From Anthoceros angustus (taxonomy: Eukaryota; Plantae; Anthocerotophyta), in assembly GCA_010909165.1 (NCBI GenBank), contig MU008151.1:620001-684000 (forward strand): a stretch of 64,000 nucleotides of DNA, written 5' to 3'. The notes under the pieces are model-generated. The model was not told the DNA's origin and searched no databases. It saw nothing but the letters and a program-made list of their open reading frames with translations. Within the stretch, counting starts at the first letter, position 1. Every line of letters starts with the position of its first letter. The position numbers were made by a program, and so were the translations under genes. Of this stretch, positions 1 to 41,118 are shown in pieces.

Positions 1-299
1 TCACCCTCTTAACTTCACCTCTCTCATTGCATTGTTTATAGATTCCCTCATGCAATTGCAACATGGTACTTAAGGACCCTCTCTCTCTTCTCCGAGTCCC
101 ATCTTTATTACACCCCATTGGGAGTACAATTAGTTAATGTTTTTCCTAAACTCTTCTTTTGCGCTCTCTCTTAACAACTATTTGTTAATGGTTGCCAGAC
201 ACGAATATCACACTTAAGGCATGCACCTTTAAAGGTGACCTAAACATAATATTATTTACCTATGTCTAAGTTAAGTGGGTCCGAGGCTCACTCTGTGTT

Positions 300-450
300 C
301 GGAGGCAAGGAGAAGGAGGGGGAGAGGAGCAGAAGGGGGAGAGGAGGGGGAAGAAGAGGAGGAGAGGAGGAAGGGGAGAGGCAAGGAGGAAAGGGGGGAG
401 ATGGATCTGAGGTAGAGGAGGAGGAGGAGTAGGAGGAGGAGGAGGAGAGA
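300..450. repeat. Polypurine (GGA/GA)n tract
   Basis: Almost pure G/A stretch with repeated ggagga units directly before the 484-bp array. Confidence 0.8.
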
Positions 451-1870
451 ATTTTTCAGCCCGCTGTGACATGATGTTGGTGAAGGGATGGTGGTGGGGC
501 GCGGGATCACGTGTCTGACCGCAGCATCTTGAGCATTGCAAGGTCGGCCAGACTGTTCCAATACGTGATTTCCTCTCAAATTTTTCAGCATTGCTATGTA
601 ACTAGCTAGTGCTTGATTTGATGTTAGAGAAGGCGATAGTAGCATGGCGAGGTGTCTCGTGTGCATGTACAAGCGCAAGTAGTTGCAAGGTCGCCAAGAC
701 CCATTCCATCGTTATTTCTTATCTCAAATTTTGTGATGCGTAACTGACTATGATGTGAAGTTAGGGAAGGCGATGGAAGAATGGAGGGTTTCATGTACAT
801 GTATAGTGCAAGGTGAGGCCAAGACCCATTCAATGCTTTGTGATTTTCTACCTCAAAATTTTATTTGATACGTGATCACCTTTGTGATGTGACATTAGAA
901 GCGATGCTAGTAGGAGGAGGAGGAGGAGAATTTTTCAGCCCTGTGACATGATGTTGGTGAAGGGATGGTGGTGGGGCGGGATCACGTGTCTGACCCATAG
1001 CGAGATCTTGCGAGCATTGCAAGGTCGAGGCCAAGACACTGTTCCAATCTTGTGATTTCCTCTCAAATTTTTCATTTGTTGCGTAACTAGCTAGCGATTT
1101 GATGTTAGAAGGCGATAGTAGCATGGCGGTGTCTCGTGTGCATGTACAAGCGCAAGTAGTTGCAAGGTCGAGCCAAGACCCATTCCATCTTTGTTATTTC
1201 TTATCTCAAATTTTTGTGATGCGTAACGGACTATGATGTGAAGTTAGGAAGGCGATGGAAGAATGGAGGGTTTCATGTACATGTATAGGCTGCAAGGTGA
1301 GGCCAAGACCCATTCAATGCTTTGTGATTTTCTACCTCAAAATTTTATTTGATACGTGATCACCTTTGTGATGTGACATTAGAAGCGATGCTAGTAGGAG
1401 GAGGAGGAGGAGAATTTTTCAGCCCTGTGACATGATGTTGGTGAAGGGATGGTGGTGGGGCGGGATCACGTGTCTGACCCATAGCGAGATCTTGCGAGCA
1501 TTGCAAGGTCGAGGCCAAGACACTGTTCCAATCTTGTGATTTCCTCTCAAATTTTTCATTTGTTGCGTAACTAGCTAGCGATTTGATGTTAGAAGGCGAT
1601 AGTAGCATGGCGGTGTCTCGTGTGCATGTACAAGCGCAAGTAGTTGCAAGGTCGAGCCAAGACCCATTCCATCTTTGTTATTTCTTATCTCAAATTTTGT
1701 GATGCGTAACGGACTATGATGTGAAGTTAGGAAGGCGATGGAAGAATGGAGGGTTTCATGTACATGTATAGGCTGCAAGGTGAGGCCAAGACCCATTCAA
1801 TGCTTTGTGATTTTCTACCTCAAAATTTTATTTGATACGTGATCACCTTTGTGATGTGACATTAGAAGCG
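430..1870. repeat. Tandem array, about 3 copies of a 480-484-bp unit with three internal subrepeats
   Basis: The marker tttttcagcc recurs at about 452, 931 and 1415, and the ORF track gives identical ORFs at 876 and 1360. Each unit holds three TGCAAGGT..CCAAGAC..CTCAAATTTT cores (about 1017, 1161 and 1291 in unit 2). Confidence 0.95.
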
Positions 1871-3899
1871 TAGGCGGTCTTGGGTGAATAGGGGTGACAA
1901 GGCCGTGAAGCGGTAGGAGGGATGTGTTTAGAGGGCCAAATCTAGGTCTTTAGCACAAAGAAGGCGAGTGTCTTGTCACCGGCCAAATGTGAGACATGTG
2001 TTGAGTGTGGGCGGTGAAAACAACACAAGGGAGTGGAAGAGGCGGGTGGCGGAGGAGGATAGGAGTGGAGCAACCAAGCAAGCTGACCATGGTGAGCGAG
2101 GGGCAAAAGCGCGTGGCGGACATGAGGCGTTGTCTAGGGAGAGAGAAGGAAGGAGGACTTGGAGCCAAACAACCCCTGGCGCATAACAAACATGGGTCAC
2201 GCGTAGCACAAACTCAAAAGGCACAAAGGCCGAGAACAAGGTCTCCTTAGGATGGTGACGGCTCTGGTCACTAGTTGGAAGGGTGGACACGGGTCTAAAG
2301 GTTCACAAAAGCCACCCAAAACCATGTTTTCTGATTTCATTAAAAAATCAACCCCGACATCTAGGAGCAAATCATAGAGGATCTGTTTTCCGTGTTTGTA
2401 TGTCGCATCTCATATTAGTTTGGCTAACCAGTGGTACATTGCCTATAAATGCGATTTGAAAATCGGGCAATTTTGTATGGACAACCAAAAGGCAACGCGC
2501 AATGGAAAGTCCACGTGTGTTGCATGTGTCCACCGTCATGGTCGCCTCTGCATTAGTGGGAGGGTCGTGGTGGCACGGGCGTTACGTGCATAAACCTTGC
2601 ATCTCACCGCCCAATGTCGGTAGCGGGAGGAGGAAGATTTCGGACGCCTACGCTCATGTCATACACTGCGAGCGCGACCCCGTCTGCGAATCGTTTGGAA
2701 GTGGCTTGCCGCGCCTCGGGCATGCGATGGAGACCTCACCTCGACGGTACCTCGAGCGAGAATTCCACATGGGCGATGGAAATTGGAAGTTGCCCGGTGG
2801 TGGCAATCACAACATGGGCGGGTTCCTTTCAAGCACGCTGGAGTGATCCCGGCCCTTCATTGCTTGGTCCTTAAGGAATTTGGTTGAGGCGGGTGGCGGT
2901 GCAAACTCGCGACACTTGTTAGCGTGTTGATCAACACACTGGATTCCACTCGGGGTTGGGCGGTGTGAATGGTGTGGAGGGCAAGGAGCACGACATGTCC
3001 AGTGTACTTGCGGTGGTCAAGGATAAAATTGGAGAAAGTCATATTGCTACATGTGTGTACCTGAGGCGGTGTTAGTGCGGCTATATGTGAAAGCAGTTGA
3101 ACATCGTTGTGTTTAGTTGGATTGTCACATGACATCCATTGTCATCTTAAATACCGGTTTTATCTCGTGGGTTTACAACATACATAGTCTTCCTAGCGAG
3201 ATTAGGAAACGATTTGGCGATTGTATTGATCGCTGCATGCATGCGAATGGACGCCGCGCTTCTTTGAAATCGGTCCGTTGTTTAAAATCCATACCTTGCA
3301 CGATTGTGCGACCAGGCGCCCATGAGCTCGCTCATCAAACACCGGCGGCAATCATCGAACACATTCTCGAATCGTCACCACTCCCATGCTTCCTAGCTTG
3401 CGTGCTCCACCAGCCGTGTTCGTTGTCTAGAGTGCCTCCGGGGACCTTGCCGCTGATGTGTTTGTTGTGTTCATAGCGCTTGCATGCACGTTCTACCAGT
3501 GCGAGATACCACCGGTCTCCGTGCTTAAGACCACCGGTCCTCCTACGAATCCTCGAAACAAACACGTAGCCTATCCACGCACGACACACCTCGATCAGAA
3601 GCAAAGTTTTCCAATCCTACATCCCCACCATCGCATCAAGCACAGGAGGGTGCTCTTCGCCTCCTTCACTTGCTCCGCATCCCCAAGGACCATTGAGTTG
3701 TCGCTGCGTGCTTCACCACTTGCCATATGACCCTTGGTCTCGGGCTTCCTCGTTGGTCTCTGCTTCAACGACACATATGAACCCCGAGCACCATGTTGTT
3801 CACCATGGGCTCCTTATTGAACGTCTTTCCGCCTCCATAGAGCTCCTCGCCCACCTCCTCCTCTTCCGTCGGTGTCCATGGAATTGATTCAAGGTCCAT

Positions 3900-4470
3900 G
3901 AATTGAGCGCACTGGGATCCACATCAGCGAAATGACATTACGGCATAAGCGAGCAGTGCTATCATACCCGACCCCGATCCCGTCGCACCCAATCTCCCTC
4001 TCATGTCTGGTGAATCAACCTCTTCAAGAGTCTTAGGGGCTTCGATAGGGGAAACAACCCGATCATCCGCGTGTTGTAACACAATTTTAGTTCCGCCGTT
4101 AAACAAACGTTGTCACTCCACCGCCAAGTTGCGTCGGTTCTCGAGCACAAGCGGTTGAGGCACACAATCCTTATCCAAGCTCCTGCGGCGCAAGTGAAAA
4201 GTCCCGCATCGTCGGCTCCGACAATCTTTGTCACATTGGTTTTATGCCGATCATGTCAAATCACCGCACGCTTCCATCGACTTCTCTAACCATAGATGTG
4301 TCATCCGAGAATGGAAGACCACAATACGAAATACAGGATGTGGTGATGCCTTTGAACCCATGATGACCCCTTCAAACTCGCCTTGGTAAATCTTGTGTCA
4401 TACTCTCGTGATTGGGGATCTAGATCCAAGCCTCGGGAGGTCTAACAACAACAAAGCATACGGTCGGGGC
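3900..4470 (-). pseudogene. Beta-class N6-adenine/N4-cytosine DNA methyltransferase domain (frameshifted)
   Basis: Frame-stitched translation gives RPYALLLLDLP(Y)GL (motif IV-like; DLP at 4434-4442), then HKTNV, then KPLRLLKRLIHQT-EGDWV..GSGSGMIA..R.NVISL.D (motif X/I-like, about 3910-4040). Motif IV before motif I is the beta-class order. Confidence 0.6.
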
Positions 4471-5399
4471 TCTACAAACCGGGCCATGTTCACTATGTTC
4501 CCACAGATCCCGACCTTGGGTTTTTCGGCTTGGAGTCGTTCACGATTGTCATCACTTATCCTCGGTGTGGTCGATTTCAAGGCACGTTGCGACTCCTCCA
4601 TCGCTTCCAAGCTCGGCCTTGAATATGTGCTCCTTGAAGTTCTCGGTAGGGCACCCCACTCAAGGCAAGTGTTGGCACGCGCACATGAAAGACACATCCC
4701 CACCGGTCAAATGCAAGCGGGCGTTCTCGTTCGAATGTACGGTGTGAATGCCTCCACTTTCCATGACTTATAAGGACAAGAAGCAGAGAAACTCGATTTG
4801 GGTATAGCTAAGTGTTCATCGAGGACCCGGTTTTTGAAGGCGGTGGAAGTTACTAATTTGATTCACCATGCGATGTCGGGATATCGTTCTGAACCTCTTC
4901 AAATGTCTCACAGTGCAAATGCTTGGCGATGTCACATGGATGAGGTTGAGTTTTTGGCCTTGTCCACCCACACGAACATTTGTTTCAATGTCAATTCTCC
5001 AGGACTTTCATGCATCTCTTCAAGTTGTTGTTCCCAGTACGGTATTCGATGCCACGAAACACTTCCATACCCTCACCGTATACTAAGCTCCTTTGTGTCA
5101 ATGACCAAGTTTGCTCTAACTTGTTGTCTTCCTTGAATTCCTGCGGCCTTTTGTGAGAGCCCGAGCTTCCACTCAGCTTTCGTCTCCCACTTCTCAAAGA
5201 TTTCATCCACGTACTTCCACACCTCATCATCAACCTTCGCAACACAATAATCCAGTGTCCGGTTATCCACGAGGCGGTGATAGCTGACCTTAGGTCCATG
5301 CTTGGCTGCATCCCACTTAGGAACCCTGCCCAGCCGGGCATATATCTCCAACTTCCAGTCTAAGTCACACTTCAGCCCATCAGCTAGCCTGGCCTTCAT

Positions 5400-5790
5400 C
5401 TCAGTTCTGATGTACCTCACACGGTCGATGAAAGTAAAAGTCTTCACGGCATCCGCAATGGTGTTGTGATCGTGGCAACTAACCTCATCTCCTCATTTGT
5501 GAGGCCCGGCAGAACATATGCATCCATCCACATACTCTTGAACCAATGGATACAAGTCGGCTAGTCTAGATCGCTGGAAGGAATGATTCCTCCCAATACA
5601 TAAAATTTGTACACCCCGATCCACCTTATCCATGTCAAAGAAGTTCTTGTTGGGACCGGGGGTCTACAATGACAATCATGGGCAGCACACCACCACGTGG
5701 AATGCTTCATCTTTTGCATCAAAGCCTCCACCCAAGCGGTCTAGCTTACGTACCTTGCCAAACCGACATAGTTCTTCCGGAGGTCTACAA
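5400..5790 (-). pseudogene. ParB/Sulfiredoxin-like domain (frameshifted), upstream of the MTase domain on the same strand
   Basis: Stitched translation gives VRKLD..WVEALMQKM..GGVLPMIVIVDP..YKFYV(L/I)GGNHS..GLTNEEMRLVA.HDHN..AVKTFTFIDRVRYIR, resembling the ParB/Srx core and its following helices. It continues into ORF 5073..5447. Confidence 0.5.
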
Positions 5791-6079
5791 GCTGATGGAC
5801 AGCTTTAACGTGGACTCCCATACTCTCTTTTCCAATTGCCTCCCTCGCAACATCTCTCGCCTCACCCTCGTGCTTTGTCGTCATCCGTGGCCTGACCGCC
5901 CTTGGCCTTCTCTATGAACTTTGGGAGCTCTTCGCCCCTCTCGGACATCATGTGCCATTCGTTGCTTCGCCGCGCTTGTTGACCTTCCCACCCGCCGTCC
6001 TCCGCGATTGCGGCCTCTCAATCCCTTCCCTCTTTTCCTCGATTGTCTACCCACTTATCGGGTACGGCTTGAACCCTTC

Positions 6080-6480
6080 GGTGCCATGGAGACCCAAATC
6101 CCGGTCCGTTGCATCCACCTCCATCGTCATCTTCCACGTCTTCGTCGGGGCTGGATATGATCCACCGGCCTCGGGCCATCGGCCCGAATGCCATCGCCAA
6201 ACCCCTCATTGTCCTGGTCCCCACCCGCATCCTCATCTTCGTCTTCGTCGGCTAGAGAGGTTAGGGTGACATCATCGCGGCCATGGGCGGACCCAAATCC
6301 CGGTCCGTTGCATCCACCTCGCCCCATCGTCATCTTCCACGTCTTCGTCGGCCGGCTGGATATGATCCACCGGCCTCGGGCCATCGGCCATGCCATCGCC
6401 AAACCCCTCATTGTCCTGGTCCCCACCCGCATCCTCATCTTCGTCGGCTAGAGAGGTTAGGGTGACATCATCGCGTGACC
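6080..6480. repeat. Direct duplication of about 200 bp encoding an acidic linker on the minus strand
   Basis: ccaaatcccggtccgttgcatccacct occurs at about 6094 and 6293. The minus strand reads DEDEDEDAGGDQDNEG. Confidence 0.9.
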
Positions 6481-8199
6481 ATGGGCTAGGAAAAACCAGC
6501 GGCTCGGAGTGTGGGCGGACTGTTGCTTGGACTCAAGCACCGGACGTCCGTGGCACGCAACCCTCTTACCAAGAAGCTTTCATTTCGCAAACTAGTTCTT
6601 TGAAGCGTGTCCGGAATTATATTTTGTGCCACCACCTTTTGTTGCGTTTTGCGGCGCGGATCATGCATATCGATGGCGGTTGCCAACGACACACTGCAGC
6701 GGATGGATTTACTGATCCCATTCCGCACTAGGAGTTGCCATTTGATTTCCACTCGCGGATGCCATGCTAGGGGCCTTCTGCGCAGATATGCCCTTTCGAT
6801 GTAAGCAATGCATCATCGCACACCTTCTAAACATTGCTGGTGCAAAGCCTTGTGGAAGACACGATGTCCATCACCGTGTCGCAATGCCTCCAAAAGTTCT
6901 TGCCTTTTCCGCTCTGGTTGGCACGCCACAATGTCAAAGTTCTTCACCGCAGACCGTATACTCTAATCCATTGCGGGTCCAGAAGAGGCTCCTTGTGCTT
7001 GAGCCGGATCAATATAGCGTACACACTCATCCTTCATGATGCGTGAAAACAAGCGCTCCCGCACATTTCTTTTGGCTGGTGTGGTTCGCATCATCCTCCA
7101 TCGACACATACAAGAAGAGCAAGTCTTGATTGGGTCATTGTTGCCTTGTCCAACTTCTCTTTGTAATGTCAAATGGCGAGATCATCTTGTACATCCGGTG
7201 GATCAAGTCAATATCGGACCGCTTGTAAGGACTCGGAAAGATGCCTTGGTCGTGAGGATGCTCTTGTGGAAAGACCCGCATCGGTGGCGCGATTTGAGTT
7301 GTCCTTGGAGTCCGGCTGGGTCAGGCTCTCGCCTCGTTCAAGGCACATGAGTCTGCCCTTCCGTCGCCTTTTTTCTCCACCGGTCTGCGATTTGTTGGAG
7401 TCATTCTTCCGCTTGAGCCCTTGGAGGAGCCATTCATATGCAACTATGAAAGAAGTGAGATCACGAAGTGTTTAGATTGTTAAAAGTCGATACACGCATG
7501 AGCTGCAACTTCTCGAACACGGGGCGATCGTGTGCAAGCGGAGTTGAGTTGATGCTCACAGACTAGCCCGGCTGCACCCTCGAGAACAGAATTGCAGCTG
7601 ATGAGGAGGTCGGCAGTGTCACTCTCATGCCGCGCCCCGATGGACAAAGTGCGGTGTGTGAGCGACCGTTTTCTCCGGTCGGCAATCTCTTGCTTTTCCG
7701 CCCACATAAGCTAGATGGAAATACACATCTTCCCGCGAGAATGAATCTATACCATCCGAGAAAGGGAAGGTCATGTCATGAAGGAAGACACAGGCAAGCG
7801 AGCTCAGTAATCAAGCAACTCCTTAAATGCTTTGTCGCCGTCGTGTTTTGCCATTGTCGGCTAATGTGGCAAATGCAAATTTGAGCATATTCTAAGGTAT
7901 ATGCTAGTTATGCCAGCTAAAATAGTGTTCGTGGCATAACGATGGGCACCTAGAGTGATTCGGCATCCACCGACTAGCGTACACGGCCGTTTCCTACCAC
8001 CGCAAAGTGGGCACCTCGACTTCATTGCGGCATTTAGTGCGAAGGCTTATTTCGCAAGCCCGGTGTCGAGTCTTGCGCATCCACTTCTCATCCACCTTGC
8101 GCATCCCTCCTCCTCCCTGGGCGTCACGCCTCCGTGTGAGAGCAATGGCCAACGGCGGCGAAGGCGTGTTCGATTTTACAAATTTCGGCCGGCGGGTCG

Positions 8200-11100
8200 A
8201 TGCATGTCATTCCGAACGGGTGGCCATGAGTCGGCGACTCAATTGTTGATCTCGGCGATGATGCACAACCCCGTCGTAGTTTTAGAGGATGATTCACGAG
8301 CTATGGCGGCCGCGTCGGAGCATAGTCCTTGAAGAGACACCGGTGGCAGACTTCACAACGGTGGAAGCGATGGCGATGTGCGTGTTCCGATATGGAGGAG
8401 CGGAGGATATGGTTGCCGGTGATGGGGACCTTTTTCTGCGATCCGGGTGCGATGCAGGCGGAGAGGATCGCAAGAGGAGCTCGTGCGGGCGTTTAACCGG
8501 ATGTCCGGTGCTCGACGCCGCGGCGAGGCGGCCGTGTGCCACCGAGGCGGCACGGCACCATCCATCCGGACTTCTTGATCACCCGGTGGCGGCGAAGATG
8601 TACCTGGCGCATTTGGGCGGAAACCGGATAACACCGGACGCCCTGCCGGACAAGGTCGGCCTCCGGCGGATCTTTGTGGCGGGTCAGAATACTATCGAGA
8701 ATGTGCTACACCAGGCAGGAGCACTGGGCAAGACTCTGATGTGGAGAGTGTTGCAGAGTCTCCGGACTTTGGTGAGAAGATCCACATTGTTGATTTTGGG
8801 CTTGGCTTGGAAACAATATCGCACGCGGGTGATGGCGGAGTTGCAAGTACTGGGAGTCGTCCAAGAGCTAATGTGGTCCGTGGTCCCGGATCTTTGTTTG
8901 GTGATTGTGATGCCATCCGGTTGGAGTTGCCTGAGATGATGCCTCGCGCACCAAAGCCAAAGGTGAGGATCTGCGTGCAACAGCTGCAGCGTTGCCAAGC
9001 GTAAAGTACCTCCGGCCGAGCTAGAATGGATTTGGTCTTAGAGAAGCATTGTTCGGGGCCAAGTTGTGCGATTTAAAGCGGCATTGTTGTGACAAAAATG
9101 TTTAGAGCGTGTTGGCCATTCAAATTGAAGGTGATTCGTGTAGCATTCTTCCGCATGACAAAAGGAGAGCGAGGCAGCATTTGCAAGACCATGGATCGAT
9201 CGAAGGCGAAGAGGAGTTGTTGCCCATAGTATGGATAAACCGGATTCCACATGGGAAGAAAGCAGTGTGTGTGAGGGCTTTTCGGGTTTTACGCATTGGG
9301 TCACTAAGATACAAGAATGCAAACCGGGTAGTGAAAAATGTTAGATGGACCGTAGGCTACGGTCTATAGCAACGCCATATGGATTACACGTCATGTGGAT
9401 GGACGTTTTCTTCAAAGGCTGTGTGGAAAGATTGCCGAATCGGGAAGTCTTCAACTTGCCGACTCGTACGAAGAGGAGATCTTCATTGAGTATGCGGTGA
9501 GCATCGATGTGCTCCCACGTTTATTCTGACTACTTTTGCAAGCTTTGGATGAAGTATTTCCGGTTAAAATACCACGGTTGCGGTTTTCGATCTGTCATGC
9601 GATGACCTAAAGAGGAAAATAAAAAGGTCGGATCACGTACAAGGTGAGATGGCGGTCCTTATTCCAGTGTCACGGATGTCCCGCCGAACTTTGGCGCAAC
9701 CCCATGGCCTCATACCCTTTTCTTGCGAATGAAGCGGCAGGGCTTGAAACAAACCGTGTGCACATTGCCGACGCCCTTATTGTTGCGTGTGCAGACAAGA
9801 ATGTGGAGCTCAGACTCCACAGAGAACAACAACAGAAGGAGCGCGCGAAAATGGCGCGGCACCGGCACAAGTGCTTGGGCGGCTAAGTTCATTGGTATTG
9901 CCATAGATGGTATGGACCAAAAAAGCGAGTTGCCCCATTCAGATTGCCAAAAGGCGGTTGATTCCGGAGCCCTTGTCGGGCTTCACGTTCTAGGTGTCTG
10001 GTGTTCAACTACTTGGTGCGCACGAGTGTATTTGAGTTTCCGAATGTGAGAAATGATCCGAGCAGCTGTGTGATTGACATGTTATCAATACGGAGGCCGC
10101 TCCCCTATTCTATACTTGCGGATGGACAACACTGCTCAAAACAAGAATCGAGGTATTGGCATATCTCCATGCTTGTGGCGAAGGTATCTTCAAAAATCAA
10201 GGTGGGGTTTCTTCTTGTTGGCCATACCACGATCATTGACCAAATGTTTTCGAGGTTCTCGGTTGTGCTAGGGTTGAAGGATGCTTTCACTTGAAATGAT
10301 AGGGTTCTTTGGAGCGGGCGTACACCCCATCACCGCAGATTCACATCTTGAAGGAGGTGCGGACTTCAAGACCTATCTATGGCCGAAGGGGATCGTCGCA
10401 GCGTATGACTTGCATAATCACGATTTTCAACACCAGTTCAAAATAACAAGGAGAAGCTGCTATCAGGAGAGGACGTGACTGTGCTAAGATGTAAGGAGTT
10501 TTCAAGTTCGATCACCGTCACCGGAGGGTGGTGTGCGGCTATTACGTTCAGGTGCCACCACGGGTGATTGTGGCGCTCCATTGTTGCCGTTGGTCCCATC
10601 ACATGCCCAAGGTAAAGGAAAGGGACATGCAAAGCGGAAGGATGCCCCGATGGCGGTAGTGGTAGTGTAGTGGCGAGTCCATGAAGTAAAAGCGGGCCTA
10701 GAACGCAGCGACATATGAATGTGGAGCAACTAGCATGGTGGGATACGTTCGGGATGAGCAGTAGCAATAGCCGAGAGACTAGCGGTGGCATTCCATTCCG
10801 TTGGAGCAGAATGGTCTTGGTACACTCGCGATGAAGAAAACGAGGCACCACCAGACCCTCCAGACTCAACTTTGGTTGATCCGCAATGGCAGATTTTTGG
10901 ACATGGTGGAGGTGTACACAGCACAGCGTGCGGAGGGAGGGCAAGGCGAGGCTCGGTCGAGGTTGTGTGAAGGAGATTGAGGAGGGAATGATGGTTCTGT
11001 CAAGCGGGATGATCCAGGGCGACCATTCGGCTCGCAAAAGTGGTGGAGGTGGACCATGATGTTGGGGTCCCTTTCATGATAGTTCATTGGTGGCGGACAG

Positions 11101-12650
11101 AGAACAATGATGCATTCGAGGGAAGGTACATGGAGGAGTTTGTGATACAGCGCCCACGGTCGAGGGAAAAAGTGCGGCGATCAAAGAATGGAGGCGAGGG
11201 CGTCGGGAGAAGCATTTGCAAAGCCTCAACTTCCCGAGACAAATGTGCTGGCCTATGATTTGTGACAAGGAACAAGGCGTTGCGAGGGCGACAATGAAGC
11301 GATAAAGACCAAAGTCTTTGAGTTGCGGAGCCGGTGATGAACCGGCGAGACTTCCGCCGGTGACACGAATGTCATGCCCAAGACATGATTGACTCGGAAG
11401 ACCTCGACAATGTGGAATCAACGGATGAGTCCACGACGTGGTGGTGGACCCGGATGGTCCGGACTCAACTTTGGTTGATCCGCAATGGCGGATTTTTGGA
11501 CATGGTCGGAGGTGTACAGGGCACATCAGTGCGGAGGGAGGGCAAGGCGAGGCTCGGTCGAGGTTGTGTGAAGGAGATTGAGGAGGGAATGATGGTTCTG
11601 TCAAGCGGGATGATCCAGGGCGACCATTCGGCTCGCAAAAGTGGTGGAGGTGGACCATGATGTTGGGGTCCCTTTCATGATAGTTCATTGGTGGCGGACA
11701 GAGAACAATGATGCATTCGAGGGAAGGTACATGGAGGAGTTTGTGATACAGCGCCCACCGGTCGAGGGAAAAAGTGCGGCGATCAAAGAATGGAGGCGAG
11801 GGCGTCGGGAGAAGCATTTGCAAAGCCTCAACTTCCCGAGACAAATGTGCTGGCCTATGATTTTGTGACAAGGAACAAGGCGTTGCGAGGGCGACAATGA
11901 AGCGATAAAGACCAAAGTCTTTGAGTTGCGGAGCCGGTGATGAACCGGCGAGACTTCCGCCGGTGACACGAATGTCATGCCCAAGACATGATTGACTCGG
12001 AAGACCTCGACAATGTGGAATCAACGGATGAGTCCACGACGTGGTGGTGGACCCGGATGGTCCGGACTCAACTTTGGTTGATCCGCAATGGCAGATTTTT
12101 GGACATGGTCGGAGGTGTACAGGGCACATCAGTGCGGAGGGAGGGCAAGGCGAGGCTCGGTCGAGGTTGTGTGAAGGAGATTGAGGAGGGAATGATGGTT
12201 CTGTCAAGCGGGATGATCCGGAGACCATTCGGCTCGCAAAAGTGGTGGAGGTGGACCATGATCGGGGTCCCTTTCATGATAGTTCATTGGTGGCGGACAG
12301 AGAACAATGATGCATTCGAGGGAAGGTACATGGAGGAGTTTGTGATGGGGCGCCCACCGGTCGAGGGAAAAAGTGCGGCGATCAAAGAATGGAGGCGGAG
12401 GCGTCGGGAGAAGCATTTGCAAAGCCTCAACTTCCCGAGACAAATGTGCTGGCCTATGATTTGACAAGGAACAAGGCGTTGCGAGGGCGACAATGAAGGC
12501 GATAAAGACCAAAGTCTTTGAGTTGCGTCGAGCCGGTGATGAACCGGCGAGACTTCCGCCGGTGACACGAATGTCATGCCATGATTGACTCGGAAGACCT
12601 CGACAATGTGGAATCAACGGATGAGTCCACGACGTGGTGGTGGACCGGTG
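8200..12650 (+). mobile_element. Degenerate Sola-like DDD DNA transposase
   Basis: Motifs: VCVRAF (about 9265), VKIPRLRFSICH (about 9565), IAIDGMDQK (9903), LYLRMDNTAQNKNR (10110), KIKVGFLLVGHT..IDQMFSRFS (10200-10265) and DFKTYL..HQFKI. The D..D..D spacing and the DN..NKN and GHT..ID..F motifs match Sola-type transposases. Several frameshifts; termini not identified. Confidence 0.7.
10863..12650. repeat. Three tandem copies of about 600 bp at the transposase 3' end
   Basis: gactcaactttggttgatccgcaatgg starts at 10863, 11462 and 12065. Repeated ORFs MIDSEDLDNVESTDES start at 11385, 11988 and 12581. Confidence 0.95.
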
Positions 12651-15126
12651 GATGGTCGGACTGCGAGGAGCCGGATGGGCAACCTAATATTGTCAACTTT
12701 CCGTTCCTTGTACCAGGGCGTTATGTCCCCTCGGGCTTGAATGCGATGGATTGTTTTCGTCTTTTCGTGAAAGGTTTAACACTTGCCATCGGCATCATCT
12801 GTTGTAGGAAGTTGGCGGTGTGATAATGTCCGGAGCATGTAAGCGGCGACTATGTCGAAACCAGATCCAATGTGGTGCTCTAATTTTCTAACAATGTTAC
12901 GGTGGTTTTGTCCGGTTGAGAGCGGCAGGTTTCAATGGTGATCATGCGGTCATCTATGTTCGACCTTGCGGTGTGGCGAAGTGTTCCCAGAGGATGGTCA
13001 CAGCCACAAGATGTCCGTGGCAAAGGTATGTATGCCGCAGCAAGTGCGGCAATGTTTGTTTTCGGTTCTAGTTAGGGACCGCCTAATGACTATGGGGGGG
13101 GGGGTCGATCTCGGTGGCAGTTGGTGACGGGGCCACAGCGTAAAGCGTGACACGAAGACGGGCTCAAAAGCAGCGTCTTCCTCCACTTCCGCCACAGAGG
13201 TTGTCTTCCACCTCCTTTGTGGTTTGTGCACGCCGCGCTCATCCCTCCTCGAGCCGTCCTCACGCCATGCTCCTCCACCTCCTTCCGACCTCGTTGTGGG
13301 TTTTGCCTTTGTTTGCCTCTCCTTACGTCCCATCCATCCAACCTTCCCTTGAACTAACTCGCTGTTTGTTTCCGGATGAGGACTCGCAGAGGTGGCTACG
13401 AGTCACCACCTCGTATCACAAGGGAGGATGTGGAGGCAAAGCGGCCAAGAGAAGGATGGAAGTTGCCCATCCAGACTTGTGTGGAGGCCATTTGGGTCTC
13501 CAGTCTGCGTGGGCGGGGAAAGACGGTATGTGTGGCCATCTCCTTCCATGCAGAGGGTGGCGGTGGCATCGTAGATTTTCCAGATCTTTGCGGTAGGAAA
13601 AAGCCAAGGGTGGAAGAGGACTATAGGATAGCGAAGGAGGGGTTCACGGAGGCGAAGGGTGCAGCAACTCCAGACAGTGGCGGAGGAAGGAGGGTGAAGG
13701 AAGAGCACGAGGACTGTCCGGTCCCAATTGTTTAAAGCTTCCGTGACCTTGCGTGCCCGTGAGTCCATGCACACGACTTACGAATGAAGGTTCTGCAGAG
13801 GAGGCGCCGCGGGAGCGGGAGCTGGGTGGAAGTGAAGGAGGAGGCGGTAAGCACTTACCTCTGTTACCTTTTCGCTTGAGTTGAGCATGGTTGTCGTTGC
13901 ATGCACTAACGGGCTGTTCATTGTGGCGAGGCAGTGATGGGGACACCCTTGGCAAACCGGAGGAGCACAATTGGAGATAGGAGCGTGAAGTGGGTTACCT
14001 AGGTTTTTGCAAGCGATCACAGACTAGAAGCGGGGCGGGGGAAGAAAGGGAGGAGAGGGGGTTGGATGCTTCGTAGCTCGGCTTCACCGGGGTCGAGTTG
14101 GGGCAGCAATCACATGATTTTGTGTATGTCAAGTTTTAGCGTCGATGTGCAAGCCATGGTGCCGAAGTGAAGCGGAACGGGGTTTGAGTTTGGGGAATGC
14201 ACATTCGGGAATGTTTTCTCCAGGCCGGTTAACTATGAGCCAACGGTCAATGTCACATGGCATGGACTAGAGGCGGTTACATATGAACTACACCATAGCG
14301 GTTTTCCAATACTTTATTAGCGAAATGTATTCATCAGCATATACTTTGTACCTTGGGGATGTATATTTGAATAATATTATTCCATGTATTTTACATGAAT
14401 AACCCTAAGGCCCTAAGTGAGCCGCTAGTGATGCATTCTGTCAATTGTGTAACATGACGGTCTACACTTTTCCATATGCCGGTTTGTAAAGGTAGCTTTG
14501 GTCGTAATGTATCCCAAAAGTGACAGATTGAAATAAAGCCTAAATAAATGTTCTAGTCTGCACGCCATAAATTTATAAGGATCTCTACTTTTCTCCCGAA
14601 TGCCTCTTTTGTTTAACCATGAGACATCGAGGTGTGGAAATATTGCCAATAAATTTCAAGTTTTGATGAAGTGGAATGGGTTTGGAGTTATGATGAGTTG
14701 TATTTTTAATGTTCCTATGAACCCTCAAAATCAACGTTAGGGTTTCTTGATTGCAAATTTTGATGACATATTTGGCCCGTCCCCGGAAAGTGGAGTGTGT
14801 CACTAGCCCTAAGGAGACCCTGTTTGAGTGCTCAAGGACAAACTAGTAAACGTATCGTGGACGTGTACAAAGTATGTACGTTATTCCGTATGACGTATAT
14901 GCTTATTTTATATAAAATAGAATATGACCATATATCACAGAAATTACCATATAGTATATGTTACCATGAACAATACGTGTATTTTACAAATAATATATTC
15001 ATACATGTATTTATATATATGTATATTCATACAAGTATCGGTGGGAACTACTAAGTAAAACTAGGTATTCTATAGGGTAATAGTGATAAAGAAGAAGGTA
15101 GATGGGGAGGAGGTTCGGTGCAAGCG

Positions 15127-15403
15127 CACTGCAAAATTGTAACAAAATTTTGATGTAACACTTTGGTTGTTGCAATTAATTTGAAATTTTAAGAGGGGAC
15201 ACAAACCACCTCTCACTACATTGCAACATGGTGCAACAAAGCTGTAACATGACTATAACAAGGTGGAGGTTGGTTTCCAAAACCCTAAGCTATGTGAGGG
15301 GTCCCAAAAGTGTAACAAGACCCCAAGATTTTAACATAATTGCAACAAAGGGGTCCAAATCTTAACATAAAATTGTAACAACATGGCGCCTTTTCTAGTA
15401 GGG
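15127..15403. mobile_element. Small CACTA-like non-autonomous element or terminus
   Basis: Starts cactgcaaaa and ends cgccttttctagtaggg, one mismatch from ..TTTTCTAGTAGTG. Dense TGTAACA/TGCAACA subterminal-type motifs. No 3-bp TSD found. Confidence 0.35.
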
Positions 15404-18400
15404 ACTAAATGACTCGCGCAGCGCCAAAATCCTACGAACTACCAGTCGAGCCTTATATCTATCAAAAGTCCAATCGGACTTAAACTTTCAACTTAAAGAC
15501 CCATTTACATGAGACTAGCTTCCTGCCTGGAGGTAAGGGTGCGAGTTCCCATGTGTCATTTTAACATGATCATACTCGGGGCCACGAGCGCCTTTTCCCA
15601 TTCCTTGTGATCGGGTGCACATGCCTCGGCCAAGAGTTTGCGAATCTAAAGGATGTGACGAATCTTGTCTTGTCATCTGTGAATGTCACGAAATACTTGC
15701 CACCTGTTGAGAAAGAGGGCCATAGAGGTTTGTGTGTACAAGTTTAAGCACTTCAAAGGCTTGATGGGAAGCCTGATTCTTGAAGGCAGCTTGGTGTTTC
15801 TTAGAGAGAACACAAGCTTCACATAAAGGCAAGGATGTAAAAGTCCCTATAGGTCCGTCCTTTTATAGATCACTAGTGGCGAGCTCCTGTAATTTTGCAT
15901 TATGTGGTTGACCTAACCGAGCATGCCACAACTGAGTCTTTGCAACCCGTTGTGCAGAGGTTTGGGGAGCGGTGACTATGAACAAGAGGGGCACCTTTCA
16001 AGCTATCACACGAGGTGCAAGCCCGAGAAAAGTTCATGATCCAAAGAGCCATAAGCAAGAATCTTCCTATGCTCAAAAGAATCTATGACTTGACATTCTA
16101 TTGTGGTAAATAAGACATGTGTATTCCCTAAGGCTTAGCAAGCTTGCTTGCTTGTGAAGCCCTTTGGGCTTCTTGATATACATATATTTTTATTAAGGAA
16201 AGAATTGTCTGCATTCAACTTCCTCACAAAAATGAGATTCCATGTCATTTTAGGGACGTAGTAAACATCCGTGTTGCAAAGACAAGACTAGAAGGACCCA
16301 TTGACTATCTCTGGGACTTGTGAAAATCGCCGCCTAGGTAAATATACTGATTAGCAACTGACCTGTATGTGTGAAATGCGTTTCTGTCAAAACATATGTG
16401 TGCTGTAGTGCCAGTGTCTAGATACCAATCTCTTAGTAGTCTAATGTCTGGCTTTGTTGACAGGCATGTGGGAAGCAAGAACGGACGTGCAAACTCCCTT
16501 GTGCCAACTGTGAGGGCAGAAGGAGTTGGCTTCTTCTTCACCACAACGTGAGTCTCAAGGTTGGTGGAGCCTTCCTTGCAAGGGATCCCACCCTGTTTCT
16601 TCCTTGCAAGCCTCCTCGATTATTACTGGCAGAACCTCGGAATTTCGGTCTTGTACCTTTTCCTCGGTTTGACGTGTACAGTGCTTGTTGTTTCCTTGCA
16701 CGCCTATGTTGGCCCCTGCTTGCCTCTTCTTGCATTAGGGCTCCCACTACTTCAGCAAAGCTCATCTTGGGTAAGTCCAACTTGGCGATCTGTGCTAACT
16801 TAGCGACTTGGGTTTATGCGGCTGTGTGAGACGTCACGAAGTGTGACCAAGACTCTGGGAGTGAAAGCATGAGGGCCATGCAGAGGTCCTCATCATCCAT
16901 CGTCTTTCTTGAAGAGCTCTCACATTTAGCAGCTAAGGATCTAAATACACCAACACGTTTTTCTATTGAGTCACTTTCTTTCATCTTGTAATTCTGAAAG
17001 TTTCTCATAGCTGCTATAATAAAACTTATGACATTTCGTGTTGAATACAGGTTCTCCAACCTTGTCCAAATCTCCGCTGCTGACTAAGCCCCACTAGTCT
17101 ACCTCAACATTTCAGATGTTAGGCCATTGCGTATAAGGTACATGGCTGCGTTGTTCCTGACTAACCATGCTTCAGCAGCTTTCGATTTTTCATCATCAGG
17201 TTTTCTTTCCTCACCCTTTGTGAGTTTCCATAACCTGCGATTTGGGAGTGCTCCTTGCATCCGAATCACCCAAATATCATAATCGGTTCCGTTAGCCGAT
17301 CTTTCTTATGAAAACCATCATCGGCTATACTTGACGTATCAGCCATCCTGGGTATTACAGGTATTACTGTGTTACCAAAACTAAGTGATGATCCTGCTGA
17401 TTGAGTGCCTTGATTACTTACTGTATCAGGTTGATCCTCTTGTCCGAAGTTAAAAGAGGATCCTCTGCTGCCATGCAACAAGTTTACAGCACTTGATGGT
17501 GATTGTCACCAAATTTAAAGGTATGTTCGGCAACTGTCTGCCTTTGCCTGATTTTTGCCTACCGTATTTCCCATCTGTTATTTGCGTATGTAGAACATGA
17601 GGGATAGGCATGAGGTGTATCAAACTTCTTACTGCGGTTGAATTGGTGCGCGGTTTTGCCAGCAATCCCTCTGAAGATCGGATTCTTCAACAACTCAGGC
17701 TTAATAAGGGTTAGTAACTTGAAATCAATATGCTCAATTTGGTCCTTCAAGTCTTGTACATCAACACTTACTGCTGTGATATTCTGACTGATATTTTCTT
17801 AGCGAGAATTTACATGCTGATCATGTGCTTCGATTCTCTGAACTAGTGTGCTCACAAGAGTTTGTGGAGCGACGTGTGTAGTCAGGAAGCCTCGTGGGTT
17901 GCCACGGCCATCAAACGCACACGTTACACGAACTTCAAGTAAATTCTGTTGATTGCGAGGGGGGAGAGCAAATGCCAAATTGCGTTCACTAGGAAATAGC
18001 CTATCAATTATTGTGTTGAATGCCTCCTTCAATTCAGCAATTTGCATAAGTAGGTTTTGGTTCTTGTGACTCCATTCATACACTCTGCGATGTAATTGAT
18101 GAGCAGGTGACAACCTATCAAGATTCCTACACCAATTTCTTCTATTTGGGATCAATTCAGCAAGCAGCAATTGCCTCTGCTGATCCTCCAAGTCGGCCAT
18201 TGCATTTGGCCTGGATTTGTATTTTCTAAAATGCAGAAACAATGCTTTTTTTTTTGTAATTTCTATAAACAATTTCTGCCAATAAGGCAGTTGTCCATCA
18301 GAATTGTTTTGTGAAAGCAATGTGATGGAGGTGCACTAGGATAAATGCCGTAAATACAGATTCTTCATAGAATTTATACAAGAAATTAATACAAATGTAT

Positions 18401-25440: not shown

Positions 25441-26117
25441 AAAAGGAGAATTTCTCTAATGGCATTTTACTGACTCTTACACTTGTTCCAGCAAATTGAG
25501 GGCCCTTCCTCCACAATTTCTCTTCAATCCTATCACGCTCCACTCTTCCTAACACTCCTACCAGAATGCACCCCTTGTATGTGAATGCATTTTTAGTACT
25601 TTCTGATTAAATGGCCAAGAGAAGACAAACAAGCAAGAACTTGGCTCGATAGGAAGAGAACTAAAAAATAAAAAAAGAAACATTAATGATAAATTATGAA
25701 AAATACCTCGGGGCTTGGATGGTCAATCTCTCTCCTATCAAACAAAGGATTTCAAGAGACCTTATTGATTGAGTCAGTCCACCACTCTGGTGCGTGGTTA
25801 TCGCATAGGGATTCTGCAGCGGCGCTGAAGTTTGTGTCTCCCACCTGTTTTTGATCAGAAGCACAAGACTTGTATTGAAAAATTATCTGGTATTTCCCCG
25901 TGGCTTGTGCAAGTCCTTCTTTCCTTGCTGCCGTTAGGTCGGTTGGCTGGGAGCAGCTGTTTCGCTGGATGCGGCAGCCGGGATGGAAAGAAGGAGCAGT
26001 AGGTGAGCCGATACCGCAGCCAACAGCAGTTCTCGTTCGCAGTGCGCGCTATCTCAAGCTCAGGCGCAGGCTGCGAGCAGTTCAACAAGTACAAGATCTC
26101 AAGAACTCGGGGAGAAG

Positions 26118-27386
26118 ATGGAGGCGCTTCCGGTGGAAGTTATCGGCAACATTCTATCCCGTCTCGCAGCTGCCAGGGATGTCACTATCGCGTCTGCAAC
26201 GTGCCGCAAATGGAGGGATGCTGCACGGTACCATCTTCACAGGTTATGCTTCCACCACACGGACTGGTCGGGTACGAAGATATGTCTTCGGAAGAGCTGG
26301 AGGTTGTGATCACACAGACTATCTTGCAAGTGACCTGTCTCCATGAGCTCTCCATCTGCTTTGACAGCGAGCACTGTTTCTCAGCAGCACCGGTGGTAGC
26401 CTGGTTGATGCACACCCGTGGCACCTTGCGCTTCCTCACCTACATGGTTTCCACGCACGAGGTGGCAATTCTGGAAAGATGTGGAAGGCAGAAACTGGAG
26501 AGTCTGGTTATCGGCAGCACTTCTGTGGTTGCTGCTTTGCACCTCGGCTTTCCAAGGTTTCCTTCCCTGGTGTCCCTCACTCTGGAGCAGGTTTACATAG
26601 AGGCTTCAGATATCCCATTGCTTCTCGTGGCTTGTCCAGTACTAGAGTCATTTTCTCTCCTCAGTCTCAAGACAGCCTCCGATTCCGAGCCGTGTGAGCT
26701 CCGAAGTGCCAGTCTCAAAGTTCTCATCATCGAAGACCTGAGAGAGTGTGTGGAGATTGTGCTGGATGCTGGGAATCTGGAAGTCCTCTCCCTGAAAGAA
26801 TTAGAGCTGGAAAGCTTGCAACTCGTCAGCAAGTGCAACCTGCGGGTCCTCCGGCTTTGCAATGTGCATCTCTTGGAGTTGCAGATCGGCGGCAGGGACA
26901 TGCTTGAAGTATTGGAAATCACCGACTCCACGGTCGGCTGGTCAAGGCTGTATGGCATCATATCGGAGGCTGTCAAGCTACGGAAGCTCAAAGTGTGGGG
27001 CCTCCCGGAAGTTGGTGAAGAAGAGAGTATCAACCTGGAAGCCATTGCCATGGCGTGCTCCCAGCTCTACCTTCTATCTCTGGGCTTCTGACCTGTCCCA
27101 TGCCGTGCTTCCGCAGATCTCTTCTCAAAGCCCTATCGTGTTTCCCAAGGTTGGTATGCTGGAAGTCTCGTCTCCTTTTATCAACTCCAACTTTGCAAAC
27201 TGGCTGGAGGGAATGGTGGACAGATGCCCAAGCTTGACCAGACTGACAGTGCATGGCTTGCTCTCCAGCCAGCTGTCTGACGCCAAAGGCCCGGAAGATT
27301 ATCAGGTGGTTGGTGCTTTCACCACTCAAATTGTATCGCTAGCGAGGAAATGTCCTAACCTAGCTGTAGAAATTTGCTACACTTGA
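26118..27386 (+). pseudogene. F-box/LRR protein (At1g67190-like), copy A, two 1-bp indels
   Basis: Nearly identical to 30129..31391, but with a G missing at about 26270 (ggtcgggtac vs ggtcggggtac) and an extra T at about 27089. Could be an assembly error. Confidence 0.85.
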
Positions 27387-30128: not shown

Positions 30129-31391
30129 ATGGAGGCGCTTCCGGTGGAAGTTATCGGCAACATTCTATCCCGTCTCGCAGCTGCCAGGGATGTCACTATC
30201 GCGTCTGCAACGTGCCGCAAATGGAGGGATGCTGCACGGTACCATCTTCACAGGTTATGCTTCCACCACACGGACTGGTCGGGGTACGAAGATATGTCTT
30301 CGGAAGAGCTGGAGGTTGTGATCACACAGACTATCTTGCAAGTGACCTGTCTCCATGAGCTCTCCATCTGCTTTGACAGCGAGCACTGTTTCTCAGCAGC
30401 ACCGGTGGTAGCCTGGTTGATGCACACCCGTGGCACCTTGCGCTTCCTCACCCACATGGTTTCCACGCACGAGGTGGCAATTCTGGAAAGATGTGGAAGG
30501 CAGAAACTGGAGAGTCTGGTTATCGGCAGCACTTCTGTGGTTGCTGCTTTGCACCTCGGCTTTCCAAGGTTTCCTTCCCTGGTGTCCCTCACTCTGGAGC
30601 AGGTTTACATAGCGGCTTCAGATATCCCATTGCTTCTCGTGGCTTGTCCAGTATTAGAGTCATTTTCTCTCCTCAGTCTTAGGACAAACTCCGAGCCGTG
30701 TGAGCTCAGAAGTGCCAGTCTCAAAATTCTCAACATCGAAGACCTGAGAGAGCGTGTGGAGATTGTGTTGGATGCTGGGAATCTAGAAGTCCTCTCCCTG
30801 AAAGAATTAGAGCTGGAAAGCTTGCAACTCGTTAGCAAGTGCAACCTGCGGGTCCTCCGGCTTTGCAATGTGCATCTCTTGGAGTTGCAGATCGGCGGCA
30901 GGGACATGCTCGAAGTATTGGAAATCACCGACTCCACGGTCGGCTGGTCAAGGCTGTATGGCATCATATCGGAGGCTGTCAAGCTACGGAAGCTCAAAGT
31001 GTGGGGCCTCCCGGAAGTTGGTGAAGAAGAGAGTATCAACCTGGAAGCCATTGCCATGGCGTGCTCCCAGCTCTACCTTCTATCTCTGGGCTTCGACCTG
31101 TCCCATGCCGTGCTTCCGCAGATCTCTTCTCAAAGCCCTATCGTGTTTCCCAAGGTTGGTATGCTGGAAGTCTCGTCTCCTTTTATCAACTCCAACTTTG
31201 CAAAATGGCTGGAGGGAATGGTGGACAGATGCCCAAGCTTGACCAGACTGACAGTGCATGGCATGCTCTCCAGCCAGCTGTCTGATGCCAAAGGCCCGGA
31301 AGATTATCAGGTGGTTGGTGATTTCACCACTCAAATTGTATCCCTAGCGAGGAAATGTCCTAACCTAGCTGTAGAAATTTGCTACACTTGA
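30129..31391 (+). CDS. F-box/LRR-repeat protein, At1g67190-like (420 aa, intronless)
   Basis: MEALPVEVIGNILSRLAAARDV.IASATCRKWR F-box, ITQTI, AWLM.TR, ILE.CGRQKLE and W.EGMVDRCP.L match the At1g67190 family as I recall it. Confidence 0.92.
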   Translation: MEALPVEVIGNILSRLAAARDVTIASATCRKWRDAARYHLHRLCFHHTDWSGYEDMSSEELEVVITQTILQVTCLHELSICFDSEHCFSAAPVVAWLMHTRGTLRFLTHMVSTHEVAILERCGRQKLESLVIGSTSVVAALHLGFPRFPSLVSLTLEQVYIAASDIPLLLVACPVLESFSLLSLRTNSEPCELRSASLKILNIEDLRERVEIVLDAGNLEVLSLKELELESLQLVSKCNLRVLRLCNVHLLELQIGGRDMLEVLEITDSTVGWSRLYGIISEAVKLRKLKVWGLPEVGEEESINLEAIAMACSQLYLLSLGFDLSHAVLPQISSQSPIVFPKVGMLEVSSPFINSNFAKWLEGMVDRCPSLTRLTVHGMLSSQLSDAKGPEDYQVVGDFTTQIVSLARKCPNLAVEICYT

Positions 31392-39584: not shown

Positions 39585-41118
39585 TTACAGGAGATCGGCC
39601 ACATTGGAAGGCAACTCCTCAATTACAGTGTTGTAGAACCTTTGGATGTCCTGCAACATCCGCTCGTCCTCCTTGGTGACAAAATTGATGGCCACTCCTT
39701 TCCTTCCAAACCGACCACTGCGGCCAATGCGGTGGAGGTAGTTCTCCGGCTGTGTCGGCAGATCATAATTGATCACCAGAGACACCTGCTGCACATCAAT
39801 GCCCCGGGCCAGCAAATCTGTGGTGATGAGCACACGGGATGAGCCTGAGCGAAATTCCCTCATAATGATGTCCCGCGTGTTTTGGTCCATGTCTCCGTGG
39901 GTGGCAGACACAGTGTGGTCACGCGCCCTCATCTTGTCCGTCAACCAATCCACCTTTCTCCTCGTGTTGATAAATATGACACTCTGAGTGATGGCCAGAG
40001 TCTCGTACAGGTCACACAAGGTGTCCAACTTCCACTCCTCCCTATCGACATTCACATAAAACTGCTTGATACCCTCGAGAGTAAGCTCATCCCTTTTCAC
40101 AAGGATCTTCACAGGCTTGTTCATAAACTTTCTAGTAATCTCCAGGGCCTCCGGTGGCATGGTTGCAGAGAAAACTCCAACCTGGAGTTTCTGAGGGAGA
40201 AGCTGGAAGATATCATAAATCTGTCACACAGAACATTCAGCAACATCAGAAGATATCCCCAGACCGCATTTCTCAGAACATTCAGGCAGAAACCATGAAG
40301 CACAGATGCACTTACCTGATCCTTAAATCCACGAGACAGCATCTCGTCGGCCTCGTCCAGCACAAAGCACTTGATAGAGTCAGGGCGCAGGGCATGACGC
40401 CTGAGCATGTCATAAACACGCCCTGGCGTTCCCACGACCACATGAACTCCGCTTTGGAGGATACGCTGATCCTCACGAACGCTAGTCCCTCCCACACAGG
40501 CGTGCACTTTCACCGAGAGGTAGTCCCCCAGGGCTCGCATCACCTTCTCAATCTGCTGCGCAAGCTCGCGGGTAGGCGCAAGCACCAAAGCCTGACACTC
40601 AAGCAAACCATACTCCAGCTGCTGCAAAATACCGGAGCAGAAAGTGGCAGTCTTTCCCGTTCCAGACTGCGCCTGCTGAATGACATCAAGACCCTTGCAG
40701 AAGGGCACAATTCCTCGTTGTTGGATAGCTGAAGGCTTCTCAAAACCTGAAACAGTTAACCTTGAGTTAATCATTACAGGTACAAGGGAGCCTACTGACA
40801 ACTCCGAGCCCACGCACTGTGAAACCCTATCCGTACCGTAAGCATAGATTCCCCTCAGCAAATTCTCATGGAGACCCATGGCATCAAAGGTCTCGTGAAC
40901 CTCATCCCAGGTAGATATGAAGTCATCTCCTTCCTGGTTCAAACTGCAGAAAAGCAAGGGGACGACGAAAGGCCAGACCCTCAGCTTTATCAACGGAAAG
41001 CACAACCAAAGTACGGCAAAACACTATCCAGGTCCAATTCGAAGGTTTACATCGAGTCCATGCGAGCGTCATACTGGCGCGCATCAAAAGCGGAACCCTC
41101 GGGTGCCAAACCAGCCAT
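39585..41118 (-). CDS. EIF4A: Eukaryotic translation initiation factor 4A (DEAD-box helicase), 413 aa, 4 exons
   Basis: Exons 41051-41118, 40837-40943, 40316-40746 and 39585-40220 have GT-AG borders and total 1242 nt. Motifs: [40 protein letters not shown] and [13 protein letters not shown]. Confidence 0.98.

Follow-up and report, generated by a model that had tools for sequence, protein, structure and literature searches.

The window analysed here, a stretch of 64,000 nucleotides from Anthoceros angustus (Anthocerotophyta; assembly GCA_010909165.1, contig MU008151.1, positions 620,001 to 684,000), carries near its start a broken gene copy on the minus strand, between positions ~6530 and 3900. 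The copy is, with a probability of about 0.8, a dead, frameshift-riddled accessory gene of a DUF7869 cut-and-paste DNA transposon (putatively of the Sola1 type) in a land-plant genome. In the intact gene, an acidic N-terminal part would be followed by a domain of probable ParB/Srx fold, then by a conserved middle region and, at the C-terminal end, by a relative of the beta-class (N6_N4) amino-methyltransferases (Table 1). An earlier reading of the same DNA from its letters alone (the original prediction) had assembled a ParB-like domain and a beta-class methyltransferase from motifs of 3900-5900. All the motif strings that it quoted are present on the minus strand in the order given, spread across three frames. 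The longest stop-free piece (139 amino acids, 5076-5492, minus strand) lies inside the middle region, and none of ten stop-free pieces matched a Pfam family at E <= 10. Searches of the window with tblastn, tblastx and blastn found no second copy.

A DUF7869 transposase remnant lies head-to-head with the broken gene on the opposite strand, ~4 kb away, with the Pfam match on 9962-10291 of the plus strand (E 6.3e-08; score 32.9 bits, cut-off 26). This remnant and the multi-copy nature of the gene family support the claim that the gene is transposon-borne. A counterpart is known from the element Sola1-1_Ec32 of Ectocarpus, in which a gene on the opposite strand encodes a 1104-amino-acid protein with ParB-like and N4C/N6A methyltransferase domains (Genome Biol 2025, PMC12477816). 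Both genes are transcribed opposite to the transposase of a cut-and-paste element, and the domain pair that is probable for the window gene is that of the Ectocarpus protein. However, the window host is a land plant, the window copy is a pseudogene and its motif IV reads DLPRG; the two proteins are unaligned and related by architecture only. The same survey cites green and red algae for the ParB-methyltransferase design and proposes self-binding and self-marking of the element DNA (PMC12477816). The suspicion that related transposon-borne methyltransferases of eukaryotes might already be catalogued was thus correct, and the copy is a new family member of a published design and mostly ordinary.

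The gene family comprises the copies P0001-P0007 and L001-L008 from Logan contigs. A family profile of 420 columns, made from the other copies alone, was aligned to the window using our own frameshift-aware dynamic programme. The alignment runs from 5877 to 4843 on the minus strand, covers profile columns 33-401 at 55% identity to the consensus and reaches 384 bits, compared with a median of 16 bits for the other 2-kb chunks of the window and 26.5 bits for the top unrelated chunk. Two neighbouring minus-strand chunks also score high, solely through long-gap extension of the same alignment. The alignment path contains 19 single-step frame shifts at ~15 sites. The span 5877-4843 is unmistakably a pseudogene of a conserved eukaryotic gene family, and the similarity is collinear through the ParB-like and middle regions. 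A phmmer search of the 139-amino-acid piece against 1.84 billion representative proteins gave only six matches (best E 6.7e-25 and 4.6e-23), all on short Logan contigs from two public runs, SRR33208241 and SRR33208242, whose source may be the same species or a relative. Conversely, tblastn of these relatives hit a single site of the window, 4877-6041 on the minus strand, with E down to 5e-32 (P0001). The middle region is apparently lineage-specific, with no match outside the two sequencing runs. Further homology searches using the L002 reading frame, the piece 4004-4255 and an alignment of the methyltransferase-like exon with L001 (A4) added P0007 as the sole new sequence and no methyltransferase-bearing relative. 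Upstream of the aligned span, LPKFIEKAK (5927-5901) matches LPKFVEIAK and LPEFVAAAK at the same position in L001 and P0007. A 202-bp unit is duplicated in tandem within the acidic coding part (6091-6486, 91% matches). In L007 (1-8645, a Logan contig of SRR33208241), the gene copy ends after the middle region without the methyltransferase exon; a ubiquilin-like gene (PF23195, ubiquitin domain) lies ~1.3 kb away on the other strand, and the contig holds no transposase.

A small DNA run (X1) of the same organism yields unitigs that reach a word depth of up to ~500 on the stretch, indicating that it is multi-copy, and that deviate from the window at 90 indel sites. Application of 12 listed indels to the window restored only some of the frames, among them the insertion of a G after 5471, which gives ..LVATDHNTIADA... 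The inserted G accounts for only 77 of 306 depth units, so most of the family DNA shares the broken state of the window, which suggests amplification of copies that were already dead. The one contig covering position 5736 has an extra C there. No RNA contig from a small RNA run of the same sample (X2) lies on the stretch, which is weak evidence of silence. The original prediction had proposed that the gene writes N6-methyladenine (6mA) or N4-methylcytosine (4mC). For the window copy this fails, as indels break the frame at ~15 sites within the first 1 kb and again in the methyltransferase part, and no RNA contig lies on it; the copy itself does nothing.

A probable intron lies just downstream of the aligned 5' span, right after an exon end reading '..F-x-L-x-F-N/K'. 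Canonical donors occur at the same point in other copies (GTAAGT in L001 and L006, GTGAGT in L005), and L001 has a ..TTTCCAG acceptor ahead of the next exon. At this point the window retains a plausible acceptor, whereas its donor is decayed, and the exon that ends in LLLLDLPRG in L001 follows in the window too. The gene family is eukaryotic, intron-containing and multi-copy, and the conserved spliceosomal intron excludes contamination. Since the intron is conserved at the same place, at least one frame change that the original prediction had put down to an indel of 1-2 bp is no indel; the explanation stands for the ~15 indel sites within 5877-4843.

The putative ParB/Srx-like remnant contains ~8 frame changes. 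Its VLGGNHS..AR motif resembles the phosphate-binding loop of the ParB/Srx fold. Atlas language-model features of P0007 residues 190-346 gave scores of 0.97 to an unnamed eukaryotic cluster, 0.96 to DUF3723 clusters and 0.92 to a ParB_N cluster, and a model of the top unnamed cluster superposes on ParB_N proteins with a TM-score of 0.58-0.65. This language-model lead and the indirect fold lead are the only grounds for the ParB label, and the ParB-likeness is probable at the level of a lead. DUF3723, a conserved cargo gene of the fungal Starship giant transposons, is likewise an accessory protein of a eukaryotic DNA transposon and has the higher feature score of the two named families; its likeness is also a lead, as no sequence-profile match of the ParB-like part to PF12520 was found at E <= 1. 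The ParB_N profile (PF02195) did not match the ParB-like part, an hhalign comparison with one plasmid ParB paired the wrong region, and metagenome contigs scanned with two short motifs of the domain yielded no relative.

The exon carrying motif IV is common to the window and L001 and reads ..EPR-x-Y-x-LLLLDLPR in both. In L001 it continues in the same frame with GLDL, whereas in the window DLPR is followed by one base left over from a loss of 2 nucleotides and then, in a different frame, by LDLDPQ... The equivalent of motif IV thus reads DLPRG. Neither (D/N/S)-P-P-(Y/F/W) nor D-L-P-Y-G occurs, the aromatic residue being missing in both copies, and the tyrosine bracketed in the DLP(Y)G of the original prediction is not in the DNA (DLPR and a broken codon in the window, DLPRG in L001). 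L001 is the only other copy covering motif IV; among the variants listed, no alternative letter reaches 10% of the family depth at 4431-4433, and in six look-ups none of the Logan contigs of the family extends past DLPRGLDL. L001 itself is probably another pseudogene, since its methyltransferase exon (2209-2260) has TGA in place of the W codon read in '..KAKAWK..' of L006.

At the family level, the ParB-like part would bind the DNA of its own element and the methyltransferase-like part would then mark that DNA with 4mC or 6mA. Since the aromatic residue of motif IV is missing also in L001, even intact members may not methylate, and the methyltransferase-like part might only bind DNA or S-adenosylmethionine (AdoMet, SAM). 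In an unlikely but more novel alternative, the methyltransferase-like domain of the transposon would have lost the aromatic residue for good in this land-plant lineage. The intact members would then be modules of a ParB-like domain and a pseudo-methyltransferase that bind DNA or AdoMet, for example recognising or shielding element DNA, and the N-terminal domain would perhaps be related to DUF3723.

The methyltransferase-like part was compared with three profiles of our own, namely mt17 (Escherichia coli YhdJ and 16 phage N6_N4 enzymes), mt7 and mt13 (the DLPYG subfamily). With cheap frame shifts and strict gaps, the best target path runs from 4060 to 3917 on the minus strand over profile columns 180-232, aligning 'GLFPLSKPLRLLKRLI..QT*EGDWV..TGSGSGMIA..RNVISL DVD' with 'HPtqKPveLleyli..GdvvLD..GSgttgva..Rkfigi Eld'. 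Using mt17 and mt7, the target ranks ~1st-5th among 128 real 1-kb chunks in most settings, and 0-2 of 400 shuffles attained its score at shift penalties of 2-3, up to 6 of 400 at a penalty of 4. Lenient gap costs give 45-55 bits in every chunk. Frameshift-aware searching, the kind of check proposed by the original prediction, gave a clear result for the family profile, as described above, and a modest one for the methyltransferase block, at 21-29 bits. Independently of this path, hhalign of the window and L001 exon against the 17-sequence alignment placed the exon on columns 4-36, the 'GD..svDlil.D.PYg' block (P 0.0068). The motif IV block (4499-4431) precedes the motif I block (4060-3917) on the same strand, with a KP helix preceding motif I; the two blocks are collinear with the profile and ~125 codons apart, a plausible spacing. 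Between them, family unitigs differ by indels at 4278, 4306 and 4403. In an Atlas search of the L001 exon, the named clusters were all SAM-dependent methyltransferase families with weak scores of 0.66-0.72, one cluster being partly N6_N4_Mtase. Of the original assignment to the beta class, the order of the blocks holds at modest significance and the DPPY-like motif does not, as it reads DLPRG. The two modestly significant collinear blocks in beta-class order and the published architecture make the methyltransferase reading of the window copy likely, not proven.

The block order is the same as that in the phage CDLPYG N6_N4 enzymes (Xanthomonas phage KPhi1 gp5, Lactobacillus phage Sabazios and the Lactococcus 936-group; PF01555, confirmed for the KPhi1 enzyme by a scan). 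The phage order is GD..l..m..ip..svDlil-DLP-x-G, then ..HPTQKP..L..LI....GD.VLD...GSGTT....R.FIGIE.D, and the window counterpart is GN.v..M..v.P..yaLLLLDLPR.., then FPLSKPLRLLKRLI..EGDWV..GSGSG..RNVISL.D. The window differs in the change of the motif IV Y to R and of H-P-T-Q-K-P to F-P-L-S-K-P, and the pairwise similarity is not significant. Among the phage and plasmid records checked for ParB-fused methyltransferases, four phage proteins have PF01555 without ParB, and two plasmid genes of ~220 amino acids are too short for a fusion. One fetched methylase locus (L026) has Shiga toxin genes in its flank.

Comparisons with other eukaryotic systems showed partial likenesses. The chlorophyte and chytrid fusions of ParB-helix-turn-helix domains with Dam-type adenine methyltransferases, traced to phage ParB-terminase loci (Iyer, Zhang and Aravind 2016, PMC4738411), similarly join a ParB-type domain to a prokaryote-derived DNA amino-methyltransferase in a eukaryote. 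However, the chlorophyte-type Dam fusions belong to the M.EcoKI/M.TaqI-like clade (group 2), whereas the window family resembles the N6_N4 arrangement (beta, PF01555-like). Marchantia DN4MT1a/b and bdelloid N4CMT, horizontally acquired N4C writers, are also prokaryote-type amino-methyltransferases in eukaryotic nuclear genomes, but they are host genes that are expressed and whose 4mC activity has been demonstrated, whereas the window copy is dead and has a non-canonical motif IV. The Marchantia DN4MT1 preprint makes no mention of a ParB domain or of transposon linkage. Within an incomplete coverage of the literature, no paper on land-plant copies and no paper mentioning the name DUF7869 was found.

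Several results weigh against an accessory gene of the proposed layout. The pieces of the window and the relatives intact over the ParB-like domain (P0007, the L002 frame, L007 and L005) have no ParB match in Pfam, PHROGs, NCBIfam or PDB sequences (E <= 1-10). The structure prediction that had been proposed as a check gave an unusable AlphaFold2 model of the ParB-like part from a 12-row alignment (mean predicted local distance difference test score, pLDDT, 52; predicted TM-score 0.38), with meaningless Foldseek matches. The claim of a ParB-like domain thus keeps its language-model lead and lacks a match in Pfam, PHROGs or the PDB sequence search and a confident fold. No methyltransferase match was found for the window pieces in Pfam, PHROGs and NCBIfam or for the L001 exon in PHROGs and NCBIfam. 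Using mt13, the target ranks only 5th-21st and is equalled by 2-40 of 400 shuffles. At stricter frameshift penalties the target is not the top chunk, and for the 17-sequence profile it is not separable from the others (penalties of at least 8 bits). The central part, 4429-4061, was read by eye and has no statistical support of its own. No convincing inverted-repeat pair was found in 1-18000 and no target-site duplication, perhaps through truncation or advanced decay of the copy.

The results on the methyltransferase part would also fit a second alternative, in which the family is real and transposon-linked, its C-terminal part is no methyltransferase and the motif series is a chance pattern from reading three frames of decayed DNA. 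None of the profile libraries matches a piece of the gene, and YhdJ alone gives a noise-level match in tblastn. The stop-free pieces are not significant against our own methyltransferase profiles (hmmsearch, E 0.44 and 5.2), and a PDB sequence search with the piece 4401-4706 and the alignment A3 returned chance matches only. However, chance would have to place two separate blocks collinearly on those profile columns where they are expected, in beta-class order and at the observed spacing, and one of these blocks was tested with the L001 exon, which is intact over the stretch and was not picked for its motifs. The named Atlas matches of that exon and the published algal counterpart with exactly the same domain pair (PMC12477816) also argue for a methyltransferase relative, and this alternative is unlikely.

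The missing inverted repeats around the two genes are in line with a third alternative, in which the copy is not transposon-borne and is the pseudogene of a domesticated host ParB-methyltransferase-like gene near an unrelated transposase fragment. The L007 copy, beside its ubiquilin-like gene on an 8.6-kb contig, is consistent with this. However, a multi-copy family that reaches word depths of hundreds and shows dozens of indel variants, a DUF7869 remnant head-to-head on the opposite strand as in the published Sola1 element, and a decay far too great for host selection make it improbable. Two tandem arrays flank the locus and are unrelated to each other. The array at 428-1870, beyond the 3' side of the gene, has three copies of a 484-bp unit with 95% matches. 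The array at 10859-12700, directly after the DUF7869 remnant, has a period of ~600 bp and copies 95-96% alike, and its long frames (e.g. 11074-12228, minus strand) are repeat artefacts.

The other genes and retrotransposons of the window are of kinds typical of land-plant nuclear DNA (Table 1). Bacterial or phage DNA, present as contamination or by very recent transfer, would account for a domain pair typical of phages and bacteria, but it is refuted by the conserved GT-AG intron and by the plant genes and long terminal repeat (LTR) retrotransposons around the stretch, and it also conflicts with homologues that came from the Logan contigs of just two runs, a metagenome scan with two short ParB-like motifs that found no relative and a family that is multi-copy in the same organism.

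Table 1. Positions of the broken gene copy, its parts and motifs, and the other features of the window.
Feature	Position	Strand	Basis or detail
Broken accessory-gene copy	~6530-3900	minus	all motif strings and family alignment
Acidic low-complexity N-terminal part (DEDED.. runs)	5880-6530	minus	reading and copy comparison
Putative ParB/Srx-like domain remnant (VRKLD, AWVEALMQKMKH, PMIVIVD, YKFYVLGG-NHS, LPGLTNEEMRLVAT-DHN, FIDRVRYIR)	5400-5877	minus	family profile, tblastn, alignments A1 and A5
VRKLD	5753-5739	minus	
PMIVIVD	5682-5662	minus	
YKFYVLGG	5611-5588	minus	
NHS..	5588-5562	minus	
HDHN	5474-5460	minus	
Conserved middle region (DWKLEIYARLG, YVDEIFEKWE, ..LTLKQM.., ..KLNLIHV.., ..FEEVQ..)	4843-5399	minus	six protein matches and family profile
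Probable intron	4644-4827 (borders approximate)	minus	decayed donor GTCCTC; acceptor ..CCTACCGAG
Methyltransferase-like part	~4640-3900	minus	
First methyltransferase-like exon (NFKEHIFKAE.., AMEESQRAL.., ..GNIVNMARFVEPRPYALLLLDLPR)	4431-4643	minus	alignment A4 with L001; hhalign
..RPYALLLLDLPR	4499-4431	minus	
Motif IV equivalent DLPR	4442-4431	minus	next codon broken at 4430
Central part, badly decayed (LDLDPQSREYD, ..FRIVVFHS, ..EACG, FDMIGI, HKTNVTK..)	4061-4429	minus	read by eye
Motif-I block (GLFPLSKPLRLLKRLI, stop codon, EGDWV, GSGSGMIALLAYA, RNVISL, DVDPS)	3896-4060	minus	frameshift-aware alignment; three frames, one stop
FPLSKPLRLLKRLI	4054-4013	minus	
EGDWV	4000-3986	minus	
GSGSGMIALLAYA	3980-3942	minus	
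RNVISL	3942-3925	minus	
DVDPSALNSW	3925-3896	minus	
DUF7869 transposase remnant	9648-10291	plus	AIDGMDQ 9900-9920; GHTTIIDQMFSRFS 10220-10261
Copia-type gag fragment	16817-17083	minus	PF14223, E 2.6e-14
Two F-box / FBD-associated leucine-rich repeat genes	26003-27088, 30129-31388	plus	PF24758, E 1.7e-10 and 8.5e-14; F-box-like, E 2.4e-08
DEAD-box helicase exon	40124-41005	minus	PF00270, E 1.7e-35
Start of plant Methyltransf_29 gene	44278-44976	minus	PF03141, E 6e-15
LTR-retrotransposon integrase	54062-55210	plus	Integrase_H2C2 and rve

An accessory gene of a DUF7869 transposon at this locus adds two mildly novel points only, that the host is probably a land plant and that motif IV reads DLPRG, as the kind itself is already known. 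The locus alone makes no open question newly testable, for which an intact copy is required. The window nevertheless documents the family, through one thoroughly dead copy, in a land plant, and hints at the amplification of copies that were already broken. The occurrence of DLPRG in both copies readable at motif IV puts in question whether the plant family methylates DNA. Transposons with their own gene for DNA binding and DNA methylation could mark or protect their own DNA, which would give the conflict of hosts and transposons an unusual turn.

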